Assembly (NCBI GenBank): GCA_002269645.1
Contig: NIVC01000507.1
Coordinates: 124,001 to 188,000, forward strand
Source of the DNA: Macrostomum lignano
Lineage: Eukaryota
Length of the DNA stretch: 64,000 nt
Direction: 5' to 3'
The notes beneath the pieces were generated by a model. It was not told where the DNA came from. It did no database searches and saw only the letters and a list, made by a program, of their open reading frames with translations. Positions within the stretch are counted from its first letter, which is position 1. Every line of letters begins with the position of its first letter. Both the position numbers and the translations under genes were made by a program. Positions 4,312 through 42,800 of the stretch are shown here, in pieces.

Positions 4312-4896
4312 GATTCAAAATCATTTCTATATCGGATTCAAAATCATTTCTATATCGGATTCAAAATCATTTTATATCAGATTCAAAATCATTTCCATGC
4401 CTGATTCAAAATCATTTCTATATCGGATTCAAAATCATTTCTATATCGGATTCAAAATCATTTTATATCAGATTCAAAATCATTTCCATGCCTGATTCAA
4501 AATCATTTCTATATCGGATTCAAAATCATTTCTATATCAGATTCAAAATCATTTCTATATCGGATTCAAAATCATTTCTATATCAGATTCAAAATCATTT
4601 CTATATCGGATTCAAAATCATTTCTATATCAGATTCAAAATCATTTCTATATCAGATTCAAAATCATTTCTATATCGGATTCGAAATCATTTTTATATCG
4701 GATTCGAAATCATTTCTATATCGGATTCAAAATCATTTCTATATCGGATTCGAAATCATTTTTATATCGGATTCAAAATCATTTCTATATCGGATTCGAA
4801 ATCATTTCTATATCGGATTCAAAATCATTTCTATATCGGATTCAAAATCATTTCTATATCGGATTCGAAATCATTTCTATATCGGATTCGAAATCA
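4312..4896. repeat. 23-bp minisatellite GATTCAAAATCATTTCTATATCG upstream of ENGase
   Basis: About 25 tandem units. Confidence 0.97.
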
Positions 4897-19290: not shown

Positions 19291-20152
19291 TTTACTGAGG
19301 TGGGTTGGAGAGGCTTACTGAGGTGGGTTGGAGAGGCTTGCTGAGGCGGGTTGGAGAGGCTTACTGAGGTGGGTTGGAGAGGCTTGCTGAGGCGGGTTGG
19401 AGAGGCTTGCTGAGCAGGGTTGGAGAGGCTTGCTGAGGCGGGTTGGAGAGGCTTGCTGAGGCGGGTTGGAGAGGCTTGCTGAGCAGGGTTGGAGAGGCTT
19501 GCTGAGGCGGGTTGGAGAGGCTTGCTGAGCAGGGTTGGAGAGGCTTGCTGAGGCGGGTTGGAGAGGCTTGCTGAGGCGGGTTGGAGAGGCTTGCTGAGCA
19601 GGGTTGGAGAGTCTTACTGAGGCGGGTTGGAGAGGCTTACTGAGGCGGGTTAGAGAGGGTTACTGGGGCGGGTTGGAGAGGCTTACTGAGGCGGGTTAGA
19701 GAGGCTTACTGAGGCGGGTTGGAGAGGCTTACTGAGGCGGGTTAGAGAGGGTTACTGGGGCGGGTTGGAGAGGCTTACTGAGGCGGGTTAGAGAGGCTTA
19801 CTGACACGGGTTAGAGGCTTACTGACACGGGTTAGAGAGGCTTACTGAGGCGGGTTGGAGAGGCTTACTGAGGCGGGTTAGAGAGGCTTACTGACACGGG
19901 TTAGAGGCTTACTGACACGGGTTAGAGAGGCTTACTGAGGCGGGTTGGAGAGGCTTACTGAGGCGGGTTAGAGAGGCTTACTGAGGCGGGTTGGAGAGGC
20001 TTACTGAGGCGGGTTAGAGAGGCTTACTGAGGCGGGTTGGAGAGGCTTACTGAGGCGGGTTAGAGAGGCTTACTGAGGCGGGTAAGAGGCTTACTGACAC
20101 GGGTTAGAGGTTTACTGAGGCAGGTTAGAGAGGGTTACTGAGGCGGTTGGAG
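19291..20152. repeat. 23-bp minisatellite CTGAGGCGGGTTGGAGAGGCTTA between BOP1 and Ric-8
   Basis: About 37 units. Confidence 0.97.
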
Positions 20153-20569
20153 TACCAGTTTTAAAGTGGTTCCTCATTTTATTTTCACTTAATTACCAGA
20201 ATGCACTTTTATAACTTCGTCTCTACCTCTTCCATGAGTAGCTAATATAAGTCAGTCAACACAGCTACGATTTTTACTGCCTTTGATCTAAACCCAATGA
20301 TTTGAAATAGTTCTAGAAGTACTATAAATAAAGAAAAGACAAAAACAGAACAGGTTGCAAGGATTTATCCATCAATCGAAAACAGTAAGATACACAGGAC
20401 TATTTTAGCGGCACAAACATTTAACAATGCGTTTACTTTGAATTTAGCATTCAGTTCAGTGGAACAAGAAGATAATTGACATACATGTATGTCGAACTAT
20501 TAGTTAAATTGACATTCGAAATGCAAGCGAGCCAACTTACTGATAGTAGGAGTACAGGCGTTTTTATCA

Positions 20570-21885
20570 TCCTATATCGATCTCAAGACTCTCATATCGA
20601 ATCTCAAGACTCAAACCGAATCGCAAAACTCTTAAACCGAATCTAAAGATTCTCATACCGAATCTCAAGACTCTCAAACCGAATCGCAAGACTCTTAAAC
20701 CGAATCTAAAGATTCTCATATCGATTCTCAAGACTCTCATACCGAATCTCAAGACTCTCAAACCGAATCGCAAGAGTCTTAAACCGAATCTAAAGATTAT
20801 CATACCGAATCTCAAGACTCTCAAACCGAATCGCAAGACTCTTAAACCGAATCTAAAGATTCTCATATCGAATCTCAAGACTCTCATACCGAATCTCAAG
20901 ACTCTCAAACCGAATCGCAAGAGTCTTAAACCGAATCTAAAGATTATCATACCGAATCTCAAGACTCTCAAACCGAATCGCAAGACTCTTAAACCGAATC
21001 TAAAGATTCTCATATCGAATCTCAAGACTCTCATACCGAATCTCAAGACTCTCAAACCGAATCGCAAGACTCTTAAACCGAATCTAAAGATTCTCATATC
21101 GAATCTCAAGACTCTCATACCGAATCTCAAGACTCTCAAACCGAATCGCAAGAGTCTTAAACCGAATCTAAAGATTATCATACCGAATCTCAAGACTCTC
21201 AAACCGAATCGCAAGACTCTTAAACCGAATCTAAAGATTCTCATATCGAATCTCAAGACTCTCATACCGAATCTTGAGACTCCCATACCGAATCTTGAGA
21301 CTCTCATATCGAATCTCAAGACTCTCATATCAAAGCTAAGACTCTCATACCGAATCTCAAGATTCTCATACCGACCTCAAGACTCTCATATCGAATCTCA
21401 AGACTCTCAAGCCGAATCTAAAGATTCTCATATCGAATCTCAAGACTCTCAAACCGAATCGCAAGACTATTAAGCCGAGTCTAAAGATTCTCATATCGAA
21501 TCTCAAGACTCACAAACCGAATCTCAAGACTATTAAGCCGAGTCTAAAGATTCTCATATCGAATCTCAAGACTCTCAAACCGAATCGCAAGACTATTAAG
21601 CCGAGTCTAAAGATTCTCATATCGAATCTCAAGACTCACAAACCGAATCTCAAGACTATTAAGCCGAGTCTAAAGATTCTCATATCGAATCTCAAGACTC
21701 TCATACCGAATCTCAAGACTCTCAAATCGAATCGCAAGACTATTAAGCCGAATCGAAAGATTCTCATACCGAATCCCAAGACTCTCATACCGAAGCTAAG
21801 ACTTAAAACGAAACTCAAGACTCTCAAACCGAATCTCAAGACTCTCATACCAAAGCTAAGACTCTCGATCAAACCGAATCTCACA
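20570..21885. repeat. 21-bp minisatellite CTCATACCGAATCTCAAGACT downstream of BOP1
   Basis: Tandem units with higher-order variant pattern. Confidence 0.97.
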
Positions 21886-21982
21886 AGTCCCATTTCGAAA
21901 CCCGAAAATCTTATTTTGAATGATTAGCTAGCCACTTTAAAACTTCATCAATCGCAAAACTACACAAAAACCTTACTTTTAC

Positions 21983-22041
21983 CGGGTAAACAGCGGGAGC
22001 AACTATGACTGCCTAATTATGGTGAAAAAACACTCGTCATC
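21983..22041 (+). other. Degenerate 28S rRNA H69-H71 fragment in the BOP1 3'UTR (antisense in the mRNA)
   Basis: CGGGTAAACAGCGGGAGCAACTATGACT...CTCGTCATC versus conserved 28S CGGGTAAACGGCGGGAGTAACTATGACTCTCTTAAGGTAGCCAAATGCCTCGTCATC (recalled consensus); 26/28 identical in the first block. Confidence 0.8.
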
Positions 22042-22054
22042 GTTTTTGTCCGTT

Positions 22055-25000
22055 TCAAGAAGAATAGAACACGATACGACCGTCGGAACCGCCGGTGACA
22101 AGCCAGGGCAGGCGAGGATGAAAGTCGCAGGCGGTGACTCGCACAATCCCGCTGCCGCCGACGCTTCCAACTTGATGGCCGCGCAGGCGTTTCACTGGCA
22201 CTAGCAGCGGATTCTCTAGCAGGTCGGCGTACACCCTGCTGTGCAGCACTAAACAGCTGCCATCGTCGCTAACAGACGCGCTTAGTGGCAGCGACGGATG
22301 AACGACGCATTGTCGGACTCCGTCGGTGTGAATTCGAAGCTGCTTGTAGGGAGTGCAGGCTAAATCCAGATCGAACCAGGCCAAACGGCTGTCCAGACTG
22401 CCGGCTAGCAGGTGGCAGCCGGTTGGATGAACGCTGAGACAGCTCAACGCGCGGCGTTTGGCTTCAGAGTCTTCAGCTTGGTGAGCTTGGCCAAGTCGTA
22501 CACCTTTAGTAGGTAGAGTTTTAATTGTGTTCAAATTTGAATTCTAATGCTTACATTTGATTGACTCCCAAAAATACCATGAGTGCCACATTGAATCTCA
22601 AAAGTGTCTTATACTGAATCTTATGAGTCTCAAGAATGCTGAGTTTTATGATTCTCATGCTGAATCTTATAAGTCTCATACTGAATCTCAAGACCCTCAT
22701 AGCGAATTTCAAGAATATTCTGAGTCTCAGGAGTCTCGTATCGAATCTCAAAACTCTCGTGCCGAGTTTAGAGTCTTATACAGAGTCTCATGAGTCTCAT
22801 AACGAGCCTCATACCGAGTCTCATGAGTCTCATACTGAGTCTCAAGAGTCCCATACCGAGTCTGAAGAATCTAATACTGAGTCTCATACCCAGTCTCACG
22901 AGTCTCATACTTAATCTCATACCGAGGCTTAACACTCTCATATCGAGTCTAAAGAGTCTCATACCGAGCCTCATGAGTGACATACCGAGAGTCATACTGA
23001 GTCTCATAAGTCTCATACCGAGTCTAAAGAGTCTTATACTAAGTCTAAAAGTCTCAAACCGAGTCTCATGAGTGTCAAACCGAGACTCATACTGAGTCTA
23101 AAAGTCTCATACCGAGTCTAAAGAGTCTTATACTAAGTCTAAAAGTCTCAAACCGAGTCTCATGAGTGTCATACCGAGACTCATACTGAGTCTCATAAGT
23201 CTCATACCGAGTCTAAAGACTCTCATACCGAGTCTAAAGACTCTCATACCGAGTCTAAAGACTCTCATACCGAGTCTAAAGACTCTCATACCGAGTCTAA
23301 AGACTCTCATACCGAGTCTAAAGACTCTCATACCGAGTCTAAATACTCTCATACCGAGTCTAAAGACTCTCATACCGAGTCTAAAGACTCTCATACCGAG
23401 TCTAAAGACTCTCATACCGAGTCTAAAGACTCTCATACCGAGTCTAAAGACTCTCATACCGAGTCTAAAGACTCTCATACCGAGTCTAAAGACTCTCATA
23501 CCGAGTCTAAAGACTCTCATACCGAGTCTAAAGACTCTCATACCGAGTCTAAAGACTCTCATACCGAGTCTAAAGACTCTCATACCGAGTCTAAAGACTC
23601 TCATACCGAGTCTAAAGACTCTCATACCGAGTCTAAAGACTCTCATACCGAGTCTAAAGACTCTCATACCGAGTCTAAAGACTCTCATACCGAGTCTAAA
23701 GACTCTCATACCGAGTCTAAAGACTCTCATACCGAGTCTAAAGAGTCTCACACCGAATTCCAAGACTCACTTGAATCCTAGCCTTCTCGGCCACGTAGAG
23801 CACAGGCTTCACCGGATCGAACTGGGCACAGCAAACCGCCGCTGTGGCCGCCTTCTTGCCGGCGCCACCTAACGGAGACTGGCTAGATCTAGTCGTCAGC
23901 CGGTGCACCAGTAGGGAGCCGCTGTCAGATACGGTCAGAAAATAATCACCCTGACGATGCCAAGCAAGCTGTTTGACACCGCCTTGAGCAGTAGGCAATT
24001 GTACAGTTGCCAGAGTGCGAGACTTTGTTATTGCAGCGCCATTAGCGGACGCTTCGGTGGAGAGAATAGTCCAAATGGCTGCTGACTGTTGCTGCTGCTG
24101 TTGCTCGCCAGAAGTGGTGGCCCAAGCTTCGGCAAATCGAGATGCCAACAGCCGGTCGCAGCTGATTAGTTCAGTGTGTAGTGGGGAAATACTATCTTAA
24201 ATACTATGAATAACTAAATTTCACTAGCAAAAAATGCGTTTATTTACTGGCTTTAGTAAGTAGCAAAATTAGCGTTTTTTTTTATTTTCGGCACTTTTTC
24301 CAAAATATTATTCAAACAGGGAAGGGGTGGTACAGAAAGCTCAGCCTCTCTACTAGCTCACTTTAAACGCTATTTTACTTAATTTTACGTACTACTCGTA
24401 CTACTCTCTGATTCGAAGGTAAGCATGGACTAAAAAAGAAACAGATGTCGATTTGTTTCACATACCGACACACAGAAGACACATACCAATTCTATGAAAA
24501 AATACTGATTCTGAGAAACTGATACTGATTCTGAGAAACAGATACTGATTCTGAGAAACAGATACCAATTCTAAGAAACAGATACCAATTCTAATAAACA
24601 GATACCAATTCTAAGAAACTTATACCGATTCTAAGAATAGATACCGATTCTAAGAAACAAAAAACCAGTCCTAAGAAACAGATGTCGATTCCAAGAATTC
24701 AATAGATTCTGAGAGATCGATACAGATTCCACGTAATTGCTAGACTAATAAATAGAAATTTTAAGAAATTGATGAACTTATTAAATCGATAGGCATTCTA
24801 AGAAAAAGATACAGATTCTAAGAAACAAAAATACACATTTGATCATTATTTATAACTCTCACCGATCCGTAGCAACCAGGTACACCCGTCCGGAGCCGGC
24901 TCCACCAGCGGCGATGCACGGCCGATCGGCGCACGGATTCCACGCGGCCGAGACCAGGCCGCCTTCACTTGCGGACTCCAACTGGGCCGACCAGGCCCTA

Positions 25001-28000
25001 TAGCCGGTGGTGAGTTCGAATACGGCTAGGCGGCCGCCGGCGCCTGACGCGGCAAACCATTGACCGCTGGGATCAACAGAGCAGGCGGTGATGGGGAGCG
25101 GCTGCTGACTGTCCTGAGCTTCCTCTGGCCAGGCCAGATACTGCAACACGCGCAGATGTGGAAAAGGTCGCAAATCTCTTGGAGCGGGCAATTTGGGCAG
25201 CAGATCCTCAGGATCCATGCTAACCCGATGTCGGACAACTCGGGCCGCCAGATGTAGATCTTGGCAACGCTCGTAGCTGAGTTAAGCAGAGTTGGCGATG
25301 GTTAGAAATTGTTAGAAATACAGAATGAAAGTAGCGACCCATTACATGAGGCAGTTTAAAGCCTTAAACTTTTGTAGTATTATGTAAGCCTACAAAGAAT
25401 CAACCGTCCAACAGCCTGTAAGCCGCTACACCTCAACGGTCTCTACAGCCTGTAAGCCGCTACACCTCAACGGTCTCTACAGTCTGTAAGCCGCTACACC
25501 TCAACAGTCCCTACAGTCTGTAAGCCGCTACACCTCAATGGTCTCTACAGTCTGTAAGTCGCTACACCTCAACGGTCTCTACAGTCTGTAAGCCGCTACA
25601 CCTCAACGGTCTCTACAGTCTGTAAGCCGCTACACCTCAACGGTCTCTACAGTCTGTAAGCCGCTACACCTCAACGGTCTCTACAGTCTGTAAGCCGCTA
25701 CACCTCAACGGTCTCTACAGTCTGTAAGCCGCTACACCTCAACGGTCCCTACAGTCTGTAAGCCGCTACACCTCAACGGTCCCTACAGTCTGTAAGCCGC
25801 TACACCTCAACGGTCCCTACAGTCTGTAAGCCGCTACACTTCAACGGTCCCTACAGTCTGTAAGCCGCTATATCTCAACAGTCCTACAGTCTGTAAGCCG
25901 CTATATCTCAACAGTCCTACAGTCCACAAAAAAGTTCCCTATTCGCTAAATCGCTAAAACTGCACAGCAGCTCACAGCTCCGATGTGTATCCCGGATACG
26001 CCGGCACGCGTCGCAGAGCCGCGTATTTGGTTGGCACAAAGTCAACCCGACGCTCGTAATCCTCTTGATTGCGCCATTTCTCCAATTCTTCGTCATCGAA
26101 TAGGTACTCCTCTGGCGGATTGTAGCTCTCGTAGTGCGTTGGCGGCGCCTATGAATATTATTGTAATTTTGCTAAAAATTAGCTCATTTTGCTGAACAAA
26201 AAAGCTATCAAACTATCGATTAATCAATCGATCAACCTATTAATGAATCAATCTATCAATAAATCAATCCATCAAACTATTAATGAATCAATCTATCAAT
26301 GAATCAATCTATCAACGAATCAATCGATCAACCTATTAATGAGTCAATCTATCAATTAATCAATCGATCAAACTATCAATAAATCAATCTATCCATGAAT
26401 TAATCTATCAAACTATTAATGCATCAATCTATCAATTAATCAATCGATCAAACTATCAATGAATCAATCTATAAAACTGTTTATGCATTAATATATTAAT
26501 TAATCAGTCTATCAACGAATCAATCGATCAACCTATCAATGAATCAATCTATCAATAAATCAATCGATCAACCTATCAATGAATCAATCTATCAATTAAT
26601 CAATCGATCAAACTATCAATAAATCAATCTATCCATGAATTAATCTATCAAACTATTAATGCATCAATCTATCAATTAATCAATCGATCAAACTATCAAT
26701 GAATCAATCTATAAAACTGTTTATGCATTAATATATTAATTAATCAGTCTATCAACAAATCAATCGATCAACCTATCAATGAATCAATCTATCAATAAAT
26801 CAATCAATCAACCTATCAATGAATCAATCTACCAAAGTATTAATGCAGTCTATCAACTAATCAATCTACAAAACTATTAATGCAGTCTATCAACTAATCA
26901 ATCGATCAACCTATCAATGAATCAACCTATCAATGAATCAATCTATCCATGAATTAATCTATCAAACTATTAATGCATCAATCTATCAATTAATCAACCT
27001 ACCAATGAATTAATCGATCAACCAAATCGCCTAATACTTCATCAATCAGTCAAGTCACTACCTGGTCAATTTTATCAATCTGCTTAATCAATCAATTATC
27101 TACCAAGACCATAAAGGTACTAGGTACCTTCTTAGGCGGCCTAATATAAGGCAGTTTCCGTCTAATAGCTTCGTCCTCGTCGCCTGCCTGCCGATCCCAG
27201 ATGCCGTAAAATCTGTTGGCATTGTCACCTCGGGCGGCAGCTTCGCGTTGGCGACGCGCTTCGGCCCGCTGCTCACCGGTGAGCATCCAGCCCATCTTGA
27301 TGGCGTGCACCATGCGCCCCACGCGGAGCCGCTCCCATTTAGATGGCACAAACGAGCTTTTACTTGGCGGGTGAGCAGTCACGGGCGTTGCCATGGTGTC
27401 AGAGGTGAACCAGTCGGTCTGAGAAGATTGGACAAATTAAACATACAGATTGAGGCATTTTTTAGAAAAGTAAGGCAGAGGCTAGTAGACACCCTGACAC
27501 AAACTAGACACACCCTGACACAAACGAGACACACACTGACACAAACTAGACACACCCTCACACAAACTAGACACACCCTCACACAAACTATACACAGCCT
27601 GACACCAACTAGACACGCCCTGACACAAACTAGACACACCCTGACACAAACTAGACACACACTGACACAAACTGGACACACACTGACACAAACTAGACAC
27701 ACCCTGACACAAACTACACACCCTGACACAAACTAGACACACCGACACAAACTAGACATACCGACACAAACTAGACATACCCTGACACAAACTAGACATT
27801 CTCAGACACACTAGACACATCCTGACACAAACTAGACACACCTTGACACAAACTACATGTAGACACACCCTGACACAAACTAAATGTAGACACACCCTGA
27901 CACAAACTACATGGAGACACATCCTGACACAAACTACATGTAGTCACAACCTGAGACAAAATAGACACACCCAGACACACCGTGACACAAACTTACACAA

Positions 28001-29075
28001 AGTGAAAACACTCAGACATATGAAGAAGATACAGCTTGACACAAAGTAAAAACACTCAGACACAAACTGACACAACCTGACAAACTAAACACAATCTGAC
28101 ACACAAACTAGACACAATATGACACAAACTAAACACAATCTGGCACAAACTAGACACAATCTGACACAAACTAGACACAGTCTGACACAACCTAGACACA
28201 ATCTGACACAAACTAGACACAATCTGACACAAACTAGACACAATCTGACACAATCTGACAGACTAGACACAATCTGACACAAACTAGACACAATCTGACA
28301 CAAACTAGACACAATCTGACACAATCTGACAGACTAGACACAAACTAGACACAATCTGACACAACCTAGACACAATCTGACACAACCTAGACACAATCTG
28401 ACACAAACTACATGTAGACACAACCTGACACAAATCTAGTTAGACACACCCTGACAGACACAAAGTACATGTAGACACCTGACAAACTACATGTAGACAC
28501 ACCCTGACACAAACTATATGTAGACACAACCTGACACAAACTAGACAACCTGACATAGTGACAGAGTGAAAACACTGAGACACTGTAAGGAGACACCCTG
28601 ACACAAACTACATGTAGGCACAACCTGACACAGAGTAGACACACCGATACACTCAGACACAAAGAACAAACAAAGGACAAATTAACAAAATTCCCAAACA
28701 ATAACGCATTCAGCTTACGTGGTCCTCGTATGGATCAACATTGGGATCCGGCACGCGACCCCGCACAATGTTCTTAACTAACTGTACATCCTCGTCGCAC
28801 AGAACAATTCGCTGCCCAGTTTTGGGGTCGATAACAGTTCTCCAGTATTCTGGATCGTCCATCTTGGCCATGAAATCGTCTAACTGATCCCCAGTGTCTG
28901 GCTTCATCAGTTTCTTACCCTCGGTATCGTAGCCAATATGAGGATATTTTGTATACCAATGCATTGGCACGTTGCCAACCGTATTGCGTATGTCCTCATC
29001 ATCTGATGAATCGTAATCATATTCGTCTGGAGCTGTCAGAGGCGATTCAATTGGCTGCTTTTTAATCTCCGACAT
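22055..29075 (-). CDS. BOP1: Ribosome biogenesis protein BOP1/Erb1 (PeBoW complex, WD40); 6 exons, about 690 aa; 1-nt frameshift in last exon as assembled
   Basis: Exons 29075-28719, 27418-27128, 26148-25976, 25276-24863, 24161-23771, 22503-22055; phases 0,0,2,2,0 consistent. Motifs [101 protein letters not shown]. Confidence 0.95.
22560..23770. repeat. 21-bp minisatellite CTCATACCGAGTCTAAAGACT filling BOP1 intron 5
   Basis: Near-perfect at 23210-23750, degenerate toward 22560. Confidence 0.97.
24480..24830. repeat. Degenerate ~20-bp minisatellite (GATTCTGAGAAACAGATAC) in BOP1 intron 4
   Basis: Recurrent GATTCTAAGAAACA motif. Confidence 0.85.
25412..25925. repeat. 34-bp minisatellite TGTAAGCCGCTACACCTCAACGGTCTCTACAGTC in BOP1 intron 3
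   Basis: About 15 units. Confidence 0.97.
26210..27030. repeat. Degenerate ATCAAT-based minisatellite in BOP1 intron 2
   Basis: ATCAATGAATCAATCT motifs with a larger internal duplication. Confidence 0.9.
27483..28660. repeat. 21-bp minisatellite ACACAAACTAGACACACCCTG in BOP1 intron 1
   Basis: Tandem units, degenerate in parts. Confidence 0.95.
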
Positions 29076-29163
29076 TGCTAAAGCTCTGCAATATTGTTAA
29101 CAGAAGATAGTTTATATTGGTTGTGGTAATTTAGGGGCTTTGTAAAACGTGCTTGTAGCTTAA

Positions 29164-29462
29164 GGGGTTGCAGCCTAGTGGTTAGAGTGTCAGGCGCACA
29201 ACTGAAAGGTCGGGGGTTCGATTCTCGACCATCTCGAAAAAATGTGTCCTTGAGCAAGACACTTAACTCTGCATTGCTTCAGTTCACCCAGCTGTAAAAT
29301 GGGTGCCAGCATTAGCTGGGGTAATTGAGGGTGTGTGTGGCGACCCCCAGTCCTTGGACTGAACAGCCATATGCAGCCTTCAGATGCGCTATGCAACAGC
29401 TGCAGCTGAGCTGTCAATTGCACATCTGCCCATTAGGGCAGGTTTAATTATTATTATTATTA
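29164..29462 (+). mobile_element. tRNA-derived SINE with CORE/Meta-like central domain
   Basis: A box (GCAGCCTAGTGG, ~29170), B box GGTTCGATTC (29215-29224), central GTGTCCTTGAGCAAGACACTTAAC...CAGTTCACCCAGCTGTAAAATGGG resembling the MIR CORE domain, (TTA)n tail at 29445-29462. Confidence 0.8.
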
Positions 29463-30442
29463 AATTAAAACTTGGTACAGTATTACTAGAACAGCAAAGG
29501 GGCAACAAATATTCTGTCTTGTATTCTACAACAGAGCCATGCTGCTACCATATCACAGTATAGTTTAGTTATAACACTACAGTTACTCACTGTGGCAGTC
29601 TCAAAGGTTGGTAAAACCAGCCTATTCAATTGTGTATACTAACCACAGCCAACTCTGCTTAACTTGCATAACTTTCATAATTTATAATTGTCATTTGTTC
29701 TAATTTTAAATAACAAATGAAAAACAAAATCAAAGAAAAATTTCTGTTTATTTGATTTAGTAGACAGGTAAAATTCGATAAAATTTATTTATCAAATAAA
29801 TGTTTAACTGCTAGCTGACCTGGCTAGCATAAATTGATAGACTAAAGGTAAGTTAAAAGATTGACAAGCACATCTAAATGGACTAGGAAGCAACCATGCA
29901 TATACTCAATTATCCTAGCTAATGCTAATACCTATTTTATAGCTAGGTGAACTGAAACAATGCAGATTTTGAAGTCTCTTGCTCAAGGACACAAAGTATT
30001 CTATGTGGTTTGAGAATCAAACCTCTTAACTTTTCATTTGTGAGTTCAACACTAAACCTTAGGCTATACCCCCCCCTAATAAATAAAACTAAGGACCAAA
30101 ATTTGACAAGCCAAAAAATCAAATAGAATAGATGATCTGAGATAATGACTAGAGCACTAGAGCACTTAACTTTACAATAATGATTGGCTTTATACTCAAT
30201 TTGACTAGACTTTCCCAAAAATGAAACATTTTTGCATGTAATATAAAAAGAAATTTGTAAATATTTGCCTCTTCTTCTTTCTATTTTTTAGTATTTTTCT
30301 CTTGTATCATTTATTTCAATTATTTTTTTGTTTCTGCAAAAAGTATAGCTATTTTAAAGAATTATTTTATAGTTCAAAATAATTTAAGCAAAAAAGGTCT
30401 ATATTGAATAAAACTGTAAATGGAAATTTTATAAAAGCATAT

Positions 30443-31203
30443 GGCTCATTCCATATAAGCATGGTCGTAACATGACAGGCTATTTTTACTTTTAAAATGA
30501 AATATAATAATAGAATATACTAAACCAATATTTTAAATGAAAGATAATTTTGTCAAAAATATTTTTATAGAGTTTCATATAGATATCATCATTAGTATAG
30601 ATGCTATTAAACCTTGAATGGCACTTATGGTCGTAACAACAGGATTTTTGACATATAGAAACTAAAAGGTAAAAGTCTTATAACATTTTTATTTTTGATA
30701 TTTTGCAATACATTTTTTTAAAATTTGACTCAGAACATCTTTAGAAATCATACTCTTTTTGTAGAATATATAAACTCAAAAAGGCAACAAAGATACAAAA
30801 GAAAAGGCAGCCTTATGGTCATAACATTATGGTTGTAACATATTTTTTTCTGTCAATTCAGTAACTTTGAGGTACCAATATATTAAAAATATAATAGATT
30901 ATTTGGTCACCAATACTTTTATCTATAGTTTGTTTCAACCTTCCAAAGCTTTCTATTTGTTTTTAAAAGGTACACAAACTTAATGATGTCTTTTGCTTAG
31001 AAAAATGTCTAAATTTTTACAAAAATGACTTTTTGCCACTTGATAGCATACTAATCTAACATTTTATCATTCATTTATTCTTAGATTGTAGATATTACAC
31101 ATAAAAAACATTTGGTAAAAAAATTGGCTGATAAGGCAATGGCAAGCAAAAATATTGACTTTTTTCTATTTTCCAAAAATGTCCATCTTATATGGAATGA
31201 GCC
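30443..31203. mobile_element. Non-autonomous TIR element (761 bp)
   Basis: Termini GGCTCATTCCATATAAG(C)ATGG and CCATCTTATATGGAATGAGCC are inverted repeats; AT on both flanks (could also be read as TA); internal repeated TTATGGTCGTAACA; no ORF. Confidence 0.75.
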
Positions 31204-32143
31204 ATACTATAATTTGAATGGATAAACTTTCAAACTATTTTTTTTTACCTAGCAATTTTGCAAATGAAAATCATATAGCTATACTTTAAATCTGGTAAAG
31301 ATGCTTGTTTAATAAATAATAGAGAAATGAAGGCCAACACCAACATATAAGTAAATTATCATTATAGCCAATGCATTTCAACACAAGCAGTCATCTTTAG
31401 GGCTTGCACTCATGATTCACAATTCTGTGTATTTAAATAAATAAAGAAAATCAAAAACTGTACAGGGCAATAGACAAATGGGTTCAGTCCGATTGATAAT
31501 TATACATTAAAAGACGAAAATAAAATAAATTATTAAGCCATCACATAGAACAAACACAGAGCAAACAATATTGGCGGGGAGAGAGCCGCAAACCCACACC
31601 AAGCGTAGAAAACTTTGAGCTGTGAACTGGCTCCTCCACCTGCAAGCTGAGTATTCAAACTAGGCCTATGATGCTTAATGTGCAAGGCTTCCAGCACAAA
31701 ACTCCCATTAATCAAACCCATTGATCAAACTCCCATTCTTTGGTGTCCTGTCCCTAAGTCTGGAAAAGAAGCTTAAAAGAACCTTCTTGAAGTATTTCAA
31801 CTCTCAGGTCATGGTTGTGTTTCAGACCGCCAAAATTGCCCAGTTTGTTAGCAGGTTGAAGTCAAAGGCCCCTAGAGCTCTGTCTGCTGGTGTCATCTAT
31901 CAATTTTGTTGCTCTGGTGATCAGAGTATTTCCTACATAGGAAAAACCAAAAGGCACCTGTACACTAGGGCTAGGGAGCATAGAATGAATAACTCCGCTG
32001 TACATGATCACTTGCTTAGTTGCAATGCTTGTTGTGAGCATGAGCCAACTGAGCTTTTCACTGTTTTGGATAGATGTAGATTTGATGGCAAACTCAGAGT
32101 GCTAGAAGACTTGCACATTAAGCATCATAGACCTAGTTTGAAT

Positions 32144-32440
32144 CATACATGCGCAACAGTCGGCCGAGTCGGCCGATCCGGCCGACCGATTTGGCGGCCA
32201 ACCAAGGAAGTCGCAAAAATGCCAACCCGAAAAAACACAGAGTAGTAGTACTAAGTAGCTGACGAGGCATTTTGGCTTTATAAGACAGTTATAGTTACTC
32301 CTGCCGTTTACCCAAAGTTGCGTTAATTTTGCTTTCGGGTTTTTTTACATGTAAGTCGCATTTTTGGCCAAAAACTACGTCGCATTTTTGTTAAAACTAA
32401 GTCGCATGGCCGACCGAAATTTGGAGGTTGCGCATGTATG
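32144..32440. mobile_element. hAT/P-like MITE (297 bp) inserted in the Penelope endonuclease; carries a 28S rRNA-derived cassette
   Basis: Perfect 14-bp TIR CATACATGCGCAAC (32144-32157) / GTTGCGCATGTATG (32427-32440); 8-bp TSD GTTTGAAT at 32136-32143 and 32441-32448; subterminal TCGGCC repeats. Confidence 0.93.
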
Positions 32441-34862: not shown

Positions 34863-35306
34863 TAATACAACTAAAAAACCTATGTTGTTTTATTTAAAAT
34901 TTCTTACTAAAAACTGACTAGCTATGAGTTATTTTGCCAAAAAAGTTTGCTCTTTATAATTTAATTTGGCAAAGGTTTTTTCTTTTACTTCTTTGATAGA
35001 CAAGTGGCAAAACATATACATCAAGAACAAAATGTATATAGAAGACCTTCCAGAGATTGCATAGCATTGCAAATATTGGCACCAATGAATCTCCTCATGC
35101 AAAATTGTAACACTGGGCCTAGCTATCCTTGGTTGTTAGGGATAAGCAAAATAAGAAATATATTTGGATACCTAGACCTCTTTGCAACCAATTTAAGAAA
35201 GTCAAAACCTAATGCATAGGCTTATTTAGTAATAGTAAGATCTATAGAGTAATTTAAATAAAAGATAATGATAACATTATCAAATATTTTATTTCATATT
35301 TTAAAG

Positions 35307-35535
35307 CATGCACGTGCAACTACTGGCTGACCTGACCATACTATAAATTGTAGTAGACTAGGGATGAATTGTAAAAATGCTTATCCAAAAGGATATAGAT
35401 ATAGTACTAATTAAATGCTTAGGCATTCAGCCTTTTAAGACAGTCATAGTTATTATTTTACTTACCCAAAATTGCATTAATTTTTCTATAGGGTTTCTTT
35501 CATAGGTAAGTTGCATTTTTGGTCAAAAAGTAAGT
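35307..35535. mobile_element. Older, truncated copy of the 32144-32440 MITE family
   Basis: Starts with degenerate TIR CATGCACGTGCAAC and is colinear with the MITE interior (GACAGTCATAGTT..TTACCCAAA, GCATTTTTGGTCAAAAA), including the 28S-like cassette at 35406-35467. Confidence 0.7.
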
Positions 35536-38189
35536 TATATAGCTAGTATAAATCAGGGGTTATCTAGATCTATCTTATCTAGAGTCCAGAAGGTTACATG
35601 TATACCAGAAAATTCCAATATACAAATGACCCTTTTCAAAGTTGGTATACAAATTTTGGCATACAAATTCATGCAATTTTTTTGCATACAAATTTGGGTA
35701 AATAAATTTATGCCATGCATAAAAATTGTAATGTAAATTTACATTTTTACATAAAATAAAGGAAAATTTGTATCATCTAAAAAGTCAGTGATAAAGTTTT
35801 TGCTTCTTTAAAATTAACAATAGATAAAAATAGTATAATTTACTGCTAGGAATGTACATTTTATATCATTCTTTCTATAGGTATAATTTAAGTTTGTTTA
35901 AATGAAAATGTTTGTAATATTTTGAAAATACTTTTTGTACAAAAGCCCCTTCTTAGGAAATTCTACTTATGAAAACCAAATGACCTTTTATTAGGACGAA
36001 TTTTTAGTATACATTTTAGGGAATTTTTTGTTTTTGGCATACACTGGTATATATTTAGTTGAGATAGGATTCTTATTCTGGTGTACACTAGACCCCTACT
36101 ACACAATCTAGACCCTAGAGGGTTGTCTTGTATATATACTAGAAAATTCTAGTGTATAATAGACTCAAAGAAATGGTAGGCCCTAGGCATAAAGTATCTC
36201 ATGTATAGAATAATCTGCCAGAAAATTCCACTATAGAGTTGACATTTGCAACATAGGCCTATAGCATAGGCCTAGCTATTAGCATACACAAACAAAAATG
36301 TTATAATGCAAAAAAGTATTCTAGGCCTATTGTTGCAATACAAAAATACAAAAAGGTCCTTTATTATAGCAATGTTTTAGGATAATGTCTAGGCCCTAGC
36401 TATATAGATCACAACTAATTTTTTGGTATAAATTTGAATTAATGGTATAATACAATATAGAGTGATCATTTTTTCTAGAAAACTAGCAAACTAGCAAAAT
36501 GTAACAGATTTAAAAATGTGGTCTAAGCTTTAAAATTGCTCATTTGCTCAATATTTGGCTCCAGTTAGTCTTAGATCATTTTTAGATCATTGTCTAATCC
36601 AGCCTATTGCCCTAGGCCTATTTATCTTTCTATACAAAAATTATTCAAATTTATTATTTTACTTTAAAGCTAGGCCTAGGCCTAGTTGATAATAGGGCCT
36701 ACACAAATACAAACACACTGCATATTCATTAACACTTGAAGACTAGAGGCCCCTAGGCTAGGCCTAAAGAGATATTGCATACAATATGAATATTAATAGG
36801 CCTATTATTGTTATATCTTAAACTGCACTGCAGCCCTATTAGGCTAGCTAGGGGCCTAGGCCCTAGGCTAAAAAATTAAACTTATATATTGGTATAATGT
36901 AGAACTGTACATACTGGCAAAATTGCAGATAAAAATTTCAAGAATATGATATTCAAGGCAAACTTTCAAATTCGAAACAAAAGTTAGGCCTAAGAAAAAA
37001 TGGAAAACCCCTTGTAGGCTAGCCATAGTAATTTTTACATGTATGCAGTGCTGCCAGTGCAGTGCTGTATTATTGGTAGGCCTAGTTTGTAGCCTACCCA
37101 TTGCCATTGGCATAAGTAAATTGTGGTCAAGATCCAGATGCTTGCTAAATTGAACAGTATTACAGTAGGCCTATTTAGTAATACTATTTAGTTTGGTGTT
37201 TGGCTCCTTTTTACTAGCCTAAACAAGTTCAAATTATAAGCACGAAAATAAATCAAAAGAAGATGACAGTTTAAAGTAAATGCATAAGAATATCAATAAT
37301 AACGAAAAGTTTACAAATAAATTTTAACCTTAAAGACTTAAGCCTAAGTATCAATCCATGGTACATAGATCCATCAATGCAAAATTAATCGCATCGCATC
37401 GAAGTCCGCGACGAGCCCGTGAGTGGCTTTTTTAAAAACTCTTTGTAAGAAAAAAGAATTAAAACAAACGTTACTATAAAATTGCACTTTTTATTATATA
37501 TAGTTTCTATTATATATTTATTAAATTAACTAAAACAAAGTTTTTTTTATTTTTTCAATCAAATTTGTATAAAAACGTCTTATTTGTATATGAATGATCA
37601 TCGAATCAGATTTACGAGCTAGAGGCGGTGTGGAGTGTGTAAGTTTTTTATTGTATATATATTGACTTGGAGTAGCAATTTAAGTGCAGGGTGGGCGGGC
37701 GGAAAAATTATGAGGTGGAGAAGCTACTGCAGAGAGAATAAACTGCGGGGTGGGGCTGCCATGGGATCGCAGAGATCGAATTGCTATTACATAGCTGGCT
37801 GCAGTCACGTACGCTGAACTTATGGGAGCTTAGAAAACTATAGGGTTGACAGCCGACAAGTAGACAAAAAATGGTATATCGATCATCGCAGACTGCATGC
37901 ATGGTGGTACGTGGTTCTTAAATGTACATTTCGCCTGATGAGCTGTCTTTGGTACCGGTATCTGCAAGCTGGGATTCTTTTTTGGGACTGTCGGCTGTTC
38001 GACTGAATCTCTATTGGCCGCTTTAAAGCACTGCTTAATATAGCCGTCGAGGCGCGTTGAAGACAGCTGCATGCTGCGCAGGTCGCGTTTTCTTTCTAGG
38101 TAGCATCGCAGGGTTCGTTCAGGTGTCGACAGGAAGATTTTTCAAATTAATAAGCGCCGCTGTTTGACTAGATGCACCAGACATAGTTG

Positions 38190-39258
38190 CTTGACAAGAC
38201 GACCCCGCGATTCGGCAAGCGAGGAAAGAGCTGGAGAGACTCCGTTTGAGCAGGCGACCAACTCTCGAGGCAGAGGAGGCGATCGGCGGCTAGCGTCTAT
38301 ATCTGCAGCGCCAGCAGGCTGCTGTTGATGACGCCATTCGGGCCGTCTTCGCCGCTGGGCCCGATGCCAGAGGCCGCGTGGCTTGGTCGGCTATGAATGC
38401 TCTGACGGAGCGAAAGCGGCGCATTCCGCTAAACCTGGCAGGTGACTCTGCGGACGAGCGCAGGAACGAGCTGCGTGAGCTTGGCCGCCATTGTCAACGT
38501 GCCACCACCCCCGCTGGCAGACAGTCTGGACGCTGCCGCCGGAGATGCCGTTGCCGGCAGAGGAGAGCTTCAGCCTAGCACCGGTCATCACAGCCGACGT
38601 TGTGAGGCTCGCCCAACAGTCACCGGGCGGGAAAGCGCTGGGCGAGGTGCCCATCGAGGCGCTGCGCATCCACTGTGTGCATGCCAGTAAGGTCGCCAGA
38701 GTGACGAATCGCGTGCTCTTCGGTGAGGAGGCAACCAACGAATGGACCACGGCTCACATCGTCGCAGTTCCTAAGAAGCCGGGCACCACGAGGCTTGAAG
38801 AGCATCGAGGCATCTGCCTCAATTCAGTCCTGCGCTGTTCAACCGGATGCTGTTATCGCGGTTGCAGCTGGTGCTGGATCCATACCTTCGGCCTGATAAG
38901 AACGGCTTCCGTCCCCGTCGCGGCACAGTGACGCAGATCCTGGCTTTTCGGCGAGTCATCGAGAAAGCACGGATACGCCAGTTGATCCTGATTGTTATCT
39001 TCATAGATTTCAAGAAGGCACTCGACTCGGTCGTCAGGTCTGTGCTCCCTAAGGTGCTCCGTGCATACAACGTGCCAGAGCAGCTGATTTCCGCCATCAT
39101 GGCGATGTACCGTGATACGAAAGCTGCTGCTTCAAACCCGGACGGCCTATCGGACTACTTTGAGACATCCTCCGGGGGCGTTCATTCGCGACCTGGCCTT
39201 AAGGCGCGCCCTGTGACGCTAACTGCGTATTCTGTTGTTGTTGTTATTGTTGTTATTA
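38190..39258 (+). mobile_element. RTE-like LINE fragment, 5'-truncated and internally deleted
   Basis: Encodes EWTTAHIVAVPKKPGTTRLEEHRGI, QLVLDPYLRPDKNGFRP, IFIDFKKALDSV up to TSSGG, then jumps to the 3' end GGCCTTAAGGCGCGCCCTGTGAC and a (TTG)n tail; homologous to the minus-strand copy. Confidence 0.85.
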
Positions 39259-39609
39259 ATATCCAATATGGCTCAGATTTGGAAAGGCGGAATTGTTGAC
39301 ATTCGAGGGGAATCGTTAACACCCGATATGGCTCAAAGATGGAATTTTTTAGATTCAAGGGGAATCGTTAAGATCCAATATGGCTCCAATATAGCTGAGA
39401 TTCCATGGCTCAAGACTGGATTGCTGAGATTCATGGCTGAAGGCGGAATTGCTGATTCGTATTTTTAACTTGCATTTCTTTGTCCATGCTTATAATATCT
39501 TTACTTATCAGCAGGGGCGTCGCAACAGATTTTATGATGGGGGGGGGCAAAGCCAAGAAGTCAACATGTACATGCCTAAATTCCTAAATTTACATAATTT
39601 TCAGAATCG

Positions 39610-39775
39610 CTGTTGTCAGCGCTCATTTTGGCGCCGCAGGCATTCATTTTGGCGCCGCAGGCACTCATTTTAGCGCCGCAGGCACTCATTTTGGCGCCGC
39701 ATGCACTTATTTTAGCGCCGCAGGCACTCATTTTGGCGCCGCAGGCACTTATTTTGGCGCCACAGGCACTATGTT
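39610..39775. repeat. 21-bp array GCGCCGCAGGCACTCATTTTG inside the hAT-like MITE
   Basis: About 7 units. Confidence 0.9.
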
Positions 39776-39804
39776 TCGTCGCCCTGCAGCAAAATTTTTG
39801 ATTT

Positions 39805-42800
39805 CCAAAACAACAACAACAACAAAGTACACTGGATAGTCTCTAGTGTCACAGGGCGCGTCTTAAGGCCAGGGTGCGAACAAAGGCCGCTCCGCCGGCA
39901 GAGTCCGGGGCGCCGACGTCAGCCAGCAGGCAGTCGATGAAACGCCGAGTGCGCACCTGTCCTCGCCGGTAGGGTGCCTGCAGCATGAGCAGCAGCACCT
40001 ACTGCACCGGCTGTGGGCAGTACGACTCGGCGCGGATGATATGACCTGCCAGCTGGAGTCGCCGACGGCGCAGCAGGTCACTTGGACGGGCCAGGCCGGC
40101 GCGGCGATAGAGTGCCGCGTTGGTGACTCGCTCGTCGCCGATCTTGAAGGTGGCGCGCAGCAGACCAGCGTGCGCCGCGTCGACTTGATGTTCGAGCGAG
40201 TCTGTCAGCGTCCAGGTCTCGGTGTTGTAGAGCAGGACGGTCTCGATTACCGCCTGGAACAGTGCCGCCCTCTGACGGTCCGGAAGGGCCTCAGACTGCA
40301 GGACCGCCCTCACAGAGCGGAAGGCAGCCCAGGCAAGCCCGCGGCGACGACGCAGATTCTCGCGAGCGTCTGGAACCAGACCGCCGAGGTAGACGAACTG
40401 CTGACATCGCGGAAGTTCCGTTGCCTGTCCGTCAGCGCCTCGGCATAGGATAGCAGCCTCGATGTCGTCCGGCACGCACAGCACGACGGTCTTCTGCGCG
40501 TTGATCATCAGGCCGACACTTGCCGCAACAGTAACCAGTCGATCAAGCTGTCACTGGGCGCCCTCAACGGTAGAGGACAGCAGGGCGAGATCGTCGGCGT
40601 AACCAAGCACGCTGAGCCGCCTCTCCGGTTGACGTCGACCCACGCGTCACCGCAGCAGGAAGCCATCGTCGTTGGAGGGAAGTGCAGTCCGCAGCATCCA
40701 GTCAAGCACCAGCACGAACAAAAACGGCGCTAGCGTATCTCCTTAAAGAACCCCCGAGGAGGTCTCGAAGAAATCCGATAGGCCATCCGGCGTCGTCACA
40801 GCAGCTTTCGTGTCGCGGTACATCGCCATGATGGCGGAAACCAGCTGCTCTGGCACGTTGGACGCACGGAGCACCATTGGGAGCGCAGCCCTGACAACCG
40901 AGTCGAACGCCTTCTTGAAATCAACAAAGATGACAATCAGGATCGACTGGCGCGTCCGCGCCTCCTCGATGACTCGGCGAAGAGCCAGGATCTGCGTCAC
41001 TGTGCTGCAATGGGGTCGGAAGCCGTTCTGCTCTGAGCGCAGGTACGGATCCAGCACCGGCTGTAACCGCGATAACAGCAGGCGGTTGAACAGCTTCGCA
41101 GCGCAGGACTGAAAGCAGATGCCTCGATGCTCTTCAAGCCTCGTGGTGCCCGGCTTCTTAGGAACTGCGACGATGTGAGCCGTGGTCCATTCGTTGGGCG
41201 CCGCCTCACTGGAAAGCACTCGATTCATCAATCTGGCGACCTCACTGGCCACACAGTGGATGCGCAGTGCTTCGGTGGGCACCTCGTCCGGACCCAGCGC
41301 CTGCCGCCCGGTGACAGCTGGGCGAGCTTCACAACGTCGGCTGTGCTGACTGGGGCTACACTGAAACTCTACTCTGCCGGCAACGGCGTCTCCGGCGGCA
41401 GCGTCAGGTTATCCGGCAGCAGGGGTGGCGGCGCGTTGACAATGGCGAAAAACTCACGCAGCTCATTTCTGCGCTCGTCCCAGTGTCGCCTGCCAGGTTT
41501 AGCGCCAAGCGCCGTTTTTGTCCCGTCAGAGCATTGATGGCAGACCAGGCCACGTGCCTTCTGGCATCGGGCCCAGCAGCAGAGACGGCCTGACAGCGGC
41601 CTGCTGGCGCTTGAGATAGATAGCCGCCAGTACATTCTCTGCTTCGCGGGTTGGCTGTCTGCTCAGACGGAGCCTCTCCACCTCCTCCTTCGCTTGCCGA
41701 ATCTCGGGGTCGTCCTGCCAGACCGGCTGCCCGCGCTGGGCTGGTTGCATCAGCGGGACTGCTTGCTCTGCGGCGGCTCGAACTGCAGCGCACACATCCG
41801 CGTACTCGGCACCGCCACGCTTGCCACCATGCGCAGTGATGAAAGCGCTGGCAAAGCGGCGATGCGTGTTGGCGTCCCTGAGCGCGCGGTAGTAGCGCTG
41901 CGGTGGCCGCTTCGGCGGACGGTAGAGCTGATCGCGAAGTCGAAGGTCGCATTTAAGCAGACGGTGATCGGACCGCAGAGCCAGCGGCGTGATAGCGCGG
42001 CAGTTGACGGCGCGACGGCGCTCACGAAAGCGCAATAGCACGTGGTCGAGCTGTGCCTGTCTGCGTGTTGCGTTCCGCCTGCGCGCGTTCCGCCGCCTCC
42101 TCTTGCAGCCCACGAAAGTCGCGAGCCCGCCCGATGAATTGCGGAAGCGGGTGCTGGCCGACACCATGTCCTGCCTCTCCAGGAAGTCCTCCAGCGCTCC
42201 GGTGTTGCCTTTCTCGCGCGGTGTCACGAACAGCGACCGCTCGGACCTACGCAGGACCGCGTTCAGGTCTCCGAGAACAGCCACTGTGTCACGCTGCGCC
42301 ATAGCCTCCACCTGCACCGAGAGCTGCTCAAAGAAGGTCTGAGCCTCATCAGCGCGGGTGGCAGGGGGCGCGTACGCACAGAACAGGCGAGCGTTCTGGC
42401 CGTGAAGCCGGACGTCGACCCGAAGCAGCCGAGGGGACAGGGAGATGCAGCGACAGCTCTGCTGCAGCCTCGGCCCGATCAGCACTCCAACTCCTCCACG
42501 ACCTCGTTCGTCCGCCGATGTGTAGTGAAGCGTCCACCCGGCGCCCAAGTCCTCACATTGAAGTCCTGGGTCGGCCTTGATGGACACCTCCTGCAGAGCA
42601 ATGACGTCACAGCTGAGGTCGAGCGCTAGCTTTGCCAGCAGCCCTCGTCGCCAGGCGGCCTTGAGAGTGCGGCAGTTCAGCGTCCCGACTCGAAGCGTGC
42701 CCTGTGGTACGGCTGGGGCTCGATGCTGTTGAGCCTCACGGTCCCCGGCGCCACCCGTAAGATCCGTCTGGACCAATGCAGAAGCAGCTCGGCGGGCGGC

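Follow-up and report, generated by a model that had tools for sequence, protein, structure and literature searches.

The 28S rRNA-derived element behind BOP1 in Macrostomum lignano is probably a neutral, decaying relic of a MITE family with a 28S core

The 3' end of BOP1 and the element behind it

The stretch of M. lignano DNA analysed here (64 kb of contig NIVC01000507.1, assembly GCA_002269645.1, henceforth referred to as the window) carries on its minus strand the 3' end of a gene that we identified as BOP1. The open reading frame that ends at the TGA at 22057-22055 aligns to residues 622-744 of the 746 residues of human BOP1 (PDB 8fkp, E=3.5e-35) and matches yeast and Chaetomium Erb1 equally well; BOP1NT is found in exons upstream of the last exon, and a 413-aa concatenate of the N-terminal exons is 99% identical to BOX15_Mlig030552g1, a 'hypothetical protein' of M. 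lignano. A protein search with the last-exon ORF alone, and an exact look-up of that ORF, returned no match. A 28S-like element occupies positions +14 to +72 after the stop codon, and both the identity of the gene and the 13-nt gap between its TGA and this element were borne out as the earlier note had described them. The M. lignano assembly contains three BOP1 loci (the window locus, to which L005 is 100% identical over window positions 19444-32084, L002 and L004), which agrees with the published description of this species as a neopolyploid with three homeologous subgenomes (PMC10733133). The features around the 3' end of the gene are as follows, in the direction of BOP1 transcription.

22055-22503, minus strand: last exon of BOP1, with its natural stop codon TGA at 22057-22055, recognized from PDB BOP1/Erb1, the Pfam domains WD40 and BOP1NT, and M. 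lignano proteins
22033-22041, plus strand: CTCGTCATC (reverse complement GAUGACGAG), which agrees with the 5' strand of H71 in 28S at 9/9 positions
22011-22032, plus strand: diverged middle of the element, the counterpart of 28S CTCTTAAGGTAGCCAAATGC or, by an alternative alignment, of TAATTATGGT, which follows the core of the element in the reference contig L001 (see below)
21983-22010, plus strand: 28-nt block, in 28S sense orientation and antisense to BOP1, at +45 to +72 from the stop codon
21910-21915, minus strand: poly(A)-signal position at +139, which reads AATAAG in the window and in L004 and is a canonical AATAAA in L002 (L002:10049-10054)
20580-21866, unstranded: 21-bp satellite array of 1.3 kb, which begins about 50 nt past +139, immediately beyond the point where the gene is presumed to end

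The window copy of BOP1 lacks one G of a GGG run (22453-22454) that is complete in both other homeologs and in a related species, and this 1-nt deletion causes a frameshift and a premature TGA at 22446-22444 on the minus strand; the annotated protein at the window locus (PAA81906.1) is 564 aa long compared to 694 aa in both other, intact homeologs. Since L004 shows no other difference from the window across the last exon, the UTR and the intron next to it, a homopolymer error in the assembly is a plausible cause of the frameshift. Arrays of 20-40-bp tandem repeats fill the introns and the 3' flank of BOP1 (20580-21866, 22792-23756, 19292-20152, 25400-25924, 26207-27022 and 27489-28434); the last intron and the downstream flank contain 21-bp units that are related to one another, and translation of the arrays yields long spurious ORFs.

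The element itself (21983-22041, plus strand) reads CGGGTAAACAGCGGGAGCAACTATGACT GCCTAATTATGGTGAAAAAACA CTCGTCATC (28 + 22 + 9 nt, 59 nt in total). By the established structure of rRNA, the whole segment is the 3' strand of H68, followed by H69, H70 and the 5' strand of H71, and the 28-nt block is the 3' strand of H68 plus H69. The 28S reference was a metagenome contig from an unrelated eukaryote (Ga0302164_10001770, henceforth referred to as L001), the single contig returned by a scan with a variant 23-mer; it contains a complete eukaryotic LSU rRNA at L001:2033-5832 (Rfam RF02543, 3025 bits) as well as a 5.8S rRNA, and its 28S reads CGAGTAAACAGCGGGAGTAACTATGACTCTCTTAAGGTAGCCAAATGCCTCGTCATC at 4617-4673. 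The 28-nt block is identical at 26/28 positions (92.9%, E=5e-5 by BLAST) to canonical 28S and to positions 4617-4644 of the L001 28S. The diverged middle, which carries GCCTAATTATGGTG, matches 28S at about 11/20 positions with three indels, and its alternative alignment to the right flank of the L001 element has p~0.002. The distance from the block to CTCGTCATC is 22 nt in the BOP1 element compared to 20 nt in 28S, which is nearly the correct spacing and keeps the pieces collinear. The 28-mer CGGGTAAACAGCGGGAGCAACTATGACT occurs a single time in the 64-kb window, where shuffles predict 0 occurrences, and no further copies of it were found in the window by a 3-mismatch pattern search or by short-word self-BLAST of the region. 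Because a 28-mer with two or fewer mismatches to the ~4-kb 28S would turn up somewhere in 64 kb with a probability of about 2.5e-5, and because the 28-mer is unique in the window, the homology is real: the element in the BOP1 flank is derived from 28S (LSU) rRNA. The claim that an antisense 28S H68-H69-H71 element lies at 21983-22041 was thereby confirmed, with 26/28 plus 9/9 matches to an Rfam-validated eukaryotic 28S. Rfam returned no match in the whole window at gathering thresholds and no LSU match at E<=10 in 601 nt and 76 nt around the element, since so short a fragment escapes the LSU model, and the canonical 57-mer had 0 matches in viral contigs.

Whether the element is part of the BOP1 transcript depends on where the 3' end of the mRNA lies. 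No poly(A) hexamer was found between the stop codon and +139, and the next AATAAA after +139 occurs only at +1871. Since no signal precedes +139 and the homeolog L002 has AATAAA at that very position, the element very probably lies inside a BOP1 3'UTR of ~160 nt. The earlier note had placed it in the UTR; a poly(A) signal ahead of the element was looked for and none was seen, in agreement with that placement, which is a prediction from the DNA. The UTRs of the BOP1 homeologs differ by an 11-nt indel (in the region of window positions 21937-21947).

A MITE family with a 28S core

When the L001 rDNA was blasted against the window, two further matches to the same 28S segment were obtained, at 32311-32250 (82.5% over 63 nt, E=2e-9) and at 35452-35406, and all three 28S-like fragments in the 64 kb fall on the same ~60-90-nt segment of the ~4-kb rRNA. 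The two further matches form the cores of two copies of a MITE.

32144-32440, minus strand: MITE copy 2, 297 bp, with the TIR CATACATGCGCAAC and the TSD ATTCAAAC; 28S-like core at 32250-32315
35306-35603, minus strand: MITE copy 3, about 298 bp, with more decayed ends; 28S-like core at 35406-35468
31653-31660, plus strand: empty target site, where ATTCAAAC is present once; it lies in an inverted copy of the GIY-YIG repeat (31621-31690)

The terminal inverted repeats of MITE copy 2 (CATACATGCGCAAC and GTTGCGCATGTATG) are complementary at 14/14 positions and are present in decayed versions in MITE copy 3, and the 8-bp TSD ATTCAAAC is found on both sides of MITE copy 2. The two copies share ~60-70 nt of non-rRNA arm homology on each side of the core, a similarity whose score was reached by 0/500 shuffles. 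MITE copy 2 interrupts the 3' end of a GIY-YIG ORF at 31721-32245 (Pfam E=2.9e-6), which reads through into the MITE and is probably a fragment of a Penelope-like element; its own homeolog lies in L002 at 453-747 and is 12.2% diverged. Copies 2 and 3 are a genuine class II MITE family with the 28S H68-H71 segment as its core. No transposase was found in the window, and the 8-bp TSD, the only character to go by, would suggest a hAT- or P-like superfamily. The earlier note had spoken of a transposon-delivered rRNA cassette at BOP1: this description is correct for MITE copies 2 and 3 and is a matter of probable derivation for the BOP1 copy, which has no arms, TIR or TSD.

The core of MITE copy 3 (35406-35468; L002:45-240) has nearly every G/C of the H68 strand changed to A/T (ACGGCGGGAG > GTAA-AATAA), a pattern that looks like heavy transition decay and is far stronger than in MITE copy 2. 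Fragments of non-LTR retrotransposons, from at least two partial copies, were seen within 38391-42776: an AP-endonuclease at 41526-42776 (minus strand) and reverse-transcriptase pieces at 40743-41282 (minus strand) and 38847-39299 (plus strand).

The reference contig itself contains a second copy of the segment. At L001:5985-6200, ~170 nt downstream of the 3' end of the 28S, lies a ~96-nt, 92%-identical duplicate of H68-H71, whose right flank resembles the right end of MITE copy 3 (GCCAG.AGTTGCA, p~0.001) and which has in common with the BOP1 copy TAATTATGGT, GTTTTT(T)GTC and a T>C in GAGCAAC (p~0.002). It may be that the 28S-core element has a greater age and a wider distribution than M. lignano itself, or that the H68-H71 segment has been duplicated repeatedly. 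The end of the contig (L001:6802-6859) is a perfect 27-nt palindrome with a 4-nt loop, possibly a fold-back artefact of the assembly or a hairpin end.

Pairing with 28S and the divergence of the 28-nt block

The mRNA strand of the block, AGUCAUAGUUGCUCCCGCUGUUUACCCG, can form 28 uninterrupted pairs with canonical 28S, including two G-U pairs, at a computed -52.2 kcal/mol (compared to -54.4 kcal/mol for the perfect antisense of the same 28 nt), and the wobble-tolerant 28-bp pairing put forward in the earlier note is to that extent possible. The block departs from canonical 28S by two transitions, each of which turns into a G-U pair when the antisense strand pairs with 28S; as the prior of both being wobble-compatible is 1 in 4 (1 in 2 each, given the orientation), the wobble argument is sound but unremarkable. 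The A at block position 10 is the natural base in the L001 28S and so may or may not count as a substitution; the core of MITE copy 2 has G there and is canonical (G and T) at both positions where the block varies. In this core, which sits inside another repeat, both G>A changes are likewise wobble-compatible, and the antisense of this core pairs more strongly with 28S (-83.6 kcal/mol) than the whole BOP1 element does (-71.2 kcal/mol), which indicates that complementarity to 28S is a property of the MITE family and not of the BOP1 copy. Full 28-bp complementarity is retained in two of the three BOP1 homeologs. In L002, three changes (TC>GA and G>A on the mRNA strand), none of them wobble-compatible, shorten the longest helix from 28 to 12 bp (12+11 bp) and weaken the duplex from -52 to -41 kcal/mol.

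The rate at which the block changes was assessed from the substitutions between the window and L002, a comparison that amounts in effect to two independent lineages, L004 being identical to the window here.

28-nt block: 3/28 (10.7%)
Rest of the 3'UTR: 6/136 (4.4%)
Adjacent intron: 10/281 (3.6%)
Last exon: 4/453 (0.9%)
Homeologous pair of MITE copy 2: 36/295 (12.2%)
Homeologous pair of MITE copy 3: 17/227 (7.5%)

The 28-nt block thus evolves no slower than neutral sequence, and the homeolog comparison gave no sign of purifying selection on it; its excess over the rest of the UTR (3/28 vs 6/136) is not significant (Fisher p=0.18), the counts being small. Unlike the block, the diverged middle (22011-22032) is identical between the window and L002. 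When the genome was duplicated, the BOP1 block departed from canonical 28S at 2/28 positions and the core of MITE copy 2 at 3/28, a comparable degree of preservation. That the differences are concentrated in the middle was considered as a mark of selection on the 28-nt block and rejected: the MITE cores are also most diverged there, and much of this pattern therefore predates the BOP1 copy; moreover, it is the middle and not the block that is unchanged between the homeologs.

The comparison across species covered one relative, represented by the transcript contig L003 (Logan, SRR28338165), which carries an intron-less BOP1 ORF with 85% aa identity. Its 3'UTR of 76 nt could not be aligned to that of M. 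lignano and has no similarity to 28S on either strand (local scores of 6-8, at the level of noise). As the M. lignano element lies at +14 to +72, a UTR of 76 nt would span it, and the element is hence absent from the equivalent position in this relative.

The earlier note had suggested that the fragment was co-opted as a feedback element, in which the antisense block of the BOP1 3'UTR would pair with pre-rRNA or 28S fragments and thereby couple the fate of BOP1 mRNA to 60S production. Its nearest precedent is the risiRNA pathway of C. elegans, in which antisense rRNA regulates rRNA metabolism through 22G small RNAs made by RdRP and acting via nuclear RNAi, and from which the proposal differs in that the antisense sequence would reside in an mRNA UTR and not in small RNAs, of whose production there is no indication at BOP1. 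In its favour are the uninterrupted 28-bp duplex of -52 kcal/mol that is possible in two of three homeologs, the probable location of the element in the UTR, and a host gene functionally related to 28S maturation. However, the divergence of the block between homeologs (10.7%) is at or above the neutral rate, being of the order of that of the MITE pairs (12.2% and 7.5%) and not below that of the UTR (4.4%) or intron (3.6%), and the helix is broken in L002; MITE cores elsewhere have equal or better 28S complementarity. In addition, judging from the established structure of the ribosome, the target would lie buried in the H68 and H69 helices of folded rRNA. The absence of the element from the orthologous UTR (one related species, 76 nt) and a divergence like that of neutral MITE copies are two of the three outcomes that the earlier note itself had named beforehand as refuting its proposal. 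Neither is the position of the element next to a gene of this kind unexpected: at the local density of 3 cores per 64 kb, roughly extrapolated from a single window, about 1.2 antisense cores per subgenome should fall no more than 200 nt past the stop codons of ~250 ribosome-biogenesis genes, so that about one such coincidence per subgenome would occur by chance. A survey of complementarity between 3'UTRs and rRNA in 14 species found conserved complementarity for 18S and none for metazoan 28S (PMC4911919). The proposal was thus not supported, and we regard such a feedback role as very improbable. A variant in which the feedback is young, lineage-specific and TE-delivered, with the block tuning the stability or localisation of BOP1 mRNA in the two intact homeologs and already being lost in the third, appears if anything even more doubtful.

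The minus strand might also be read as a guide of box C/D snoRNA type that targets 28S H69 and would be processed out of the BOP1 transcript, of the class to which yeast snR63 and human SNORD46, box C/D guides against H69, belong. Like these, it has an antisense of the H69 region after a C-box-like motif, and Rfam gave weak C/D matches on the minus strand (ceN65 E=0.41, sR55 E=1.1, snoU6-47 E=2.1), which stem from the C-box-like GAUGACGA upstream of the 28S-antisense stretch; the motif AUGACGA has one mismatch to the C box RUGAUGA. Unlike these, no CUGA D or D' box is present within 190 nt after the stop codon, the Rfam scores are 11-19 bits compared to gathering thresholds of 35-54 (best 18.7 bits vs 54), and the antisense stretch of 28 nt is longer than snoRNA guides, which have 10-21 nt. 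Moreover, the 'C box' (GAUGACGAG) is the reverse complement of 28S CUCGUCAUC and is collinear with the rest of the rDNA fragment. With no D box and with Rfam scores below threshold this reading was rejected, its likelihood being close to nil.

Origin of the BOP1 copy and its meaning

We favour a descent of the BOP1 copy from the MITE family, with subsequent loss of the arms, because it holds the identical 28S segment and because, like both MITE cores, it has after GACT a derived G in place of the C of 28S; this descent would have to be read from the core, as no significant resemblance links the flanks of the BOP1 copy to the MITE arms (p 0.27-0.67) and neither a TIR nor a TSD is present around it. 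Another character, the T>C in GAGCAAC, is found in the BOP1 copy and the L001 element and not in MITE copies 2 or 3, and since the two shared characters conflict, at least one of them arose independently. The alternative is an independent capture, in which a short, functionless piece of rDNA or rRNA was captured straight into the sequence 3' of BOP1, either as filler DNA where a break had occurred or as a retro-copied fragment. That the BOP1 flanks are unlike the MITE arms and are without TIR or TSD is in keeping with such a capture, as is the closeness of the BOP1 block to 28S (26/28), which is on a par with that of the best MITE core (25/28), and the ~96-nt spacer duplicate in L001 suggests that the segment may be copied recurrently. 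Against it, the chance that a capture would take the same ~60-nt piece of the ~4-kb rRNA as a MITE 10 kb away is roughly 1-2%, and the derived G after GACT is common to the BOP1 copy and both MITE cores. We therefore consider independent capture unlikely, and the BOP1 element is in our judgement probably a neutral, decaying relic of the 28S-core MITE family; that it is a neutral relic of one origin or the other, MITE-derived or independently captured, is very likely.

Under the favoured MITE derivation, a fragment of 28S rDNA from the 3' strand of H68 to H71 would have reached the 3' flank of BOP1 within a class II MITE with an 8-bp TSD. The insertion would have taken place in the M. lignano lineage before its recent genome duplication; the element is at the same position in all three BOP1 homeologs, which makes the insertion older than that duplication. 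The arms of the MITE would since have been lost at BOP1, or never inserted there, and the remnant would most probably be transcribed in the BOP1 3'UTR of ~160 nt as a 28-nt antisense match to 28S that is not maintained. We infer that the element has no function at BOP1.

A review of TE modules derived from rDNA describes SINE28 (28S), Pokey/mPok (IGS repeats), 5S-derived SINEs and Cassandra TRIMs (PMC10946416). In these systems captured rDNA is borne inside a mobile element and spread over the genome, also into genes (PMC10946416), and the M. lignano family is alike in this. Unlike SINE28, Pokey, the 5S SINEs and Cassandra, the carrier in M. lignano is a class II MITE of ~297 bp, which has an 8-bp TSD and an H68-H71 module, and a 28S-core MITE is not among the rDNA-derived TE sequences tabulated in that review (PMC10946416). 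The BOP1 case also resembles the rRNA-complementary mRNAs of the ribosome filter idea, in that a stretch of UTR complementary to rRNA lies near the stop codon; the conserved signal in the published survey, however, consists of short (5-10 nt) 18S matches near the mRNA entry channel (PMC4911919), whereas the M. lignano match is long, TE-derived and not conserved.

Overall, the BOP1 case matters little: it adds one more TE-borne rRNA fragment in a UTR, and finding it beside a ribosome-biogenesis gene is roughly what one would expect by chance, given how dense the element is locally. Were the feedback true, it would provide a rare case in which an mRNA directly senses its own rRNA substrate. The segment H68-H71 is presumably the same 28S region that is targeted by R2, Pokey and I-PpoI. 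Of modest value is that M. lignano has a MITE family built around this segment, which is not listed in a recent catalogue of rDNA-derived TEs (PMC10946416). Such 28S-core MITEs will give false 'antisense rRNA' signals in screens of UTRs, and they may confound rRNA-depletion or rRNA-fragment analyses in M. lignano.
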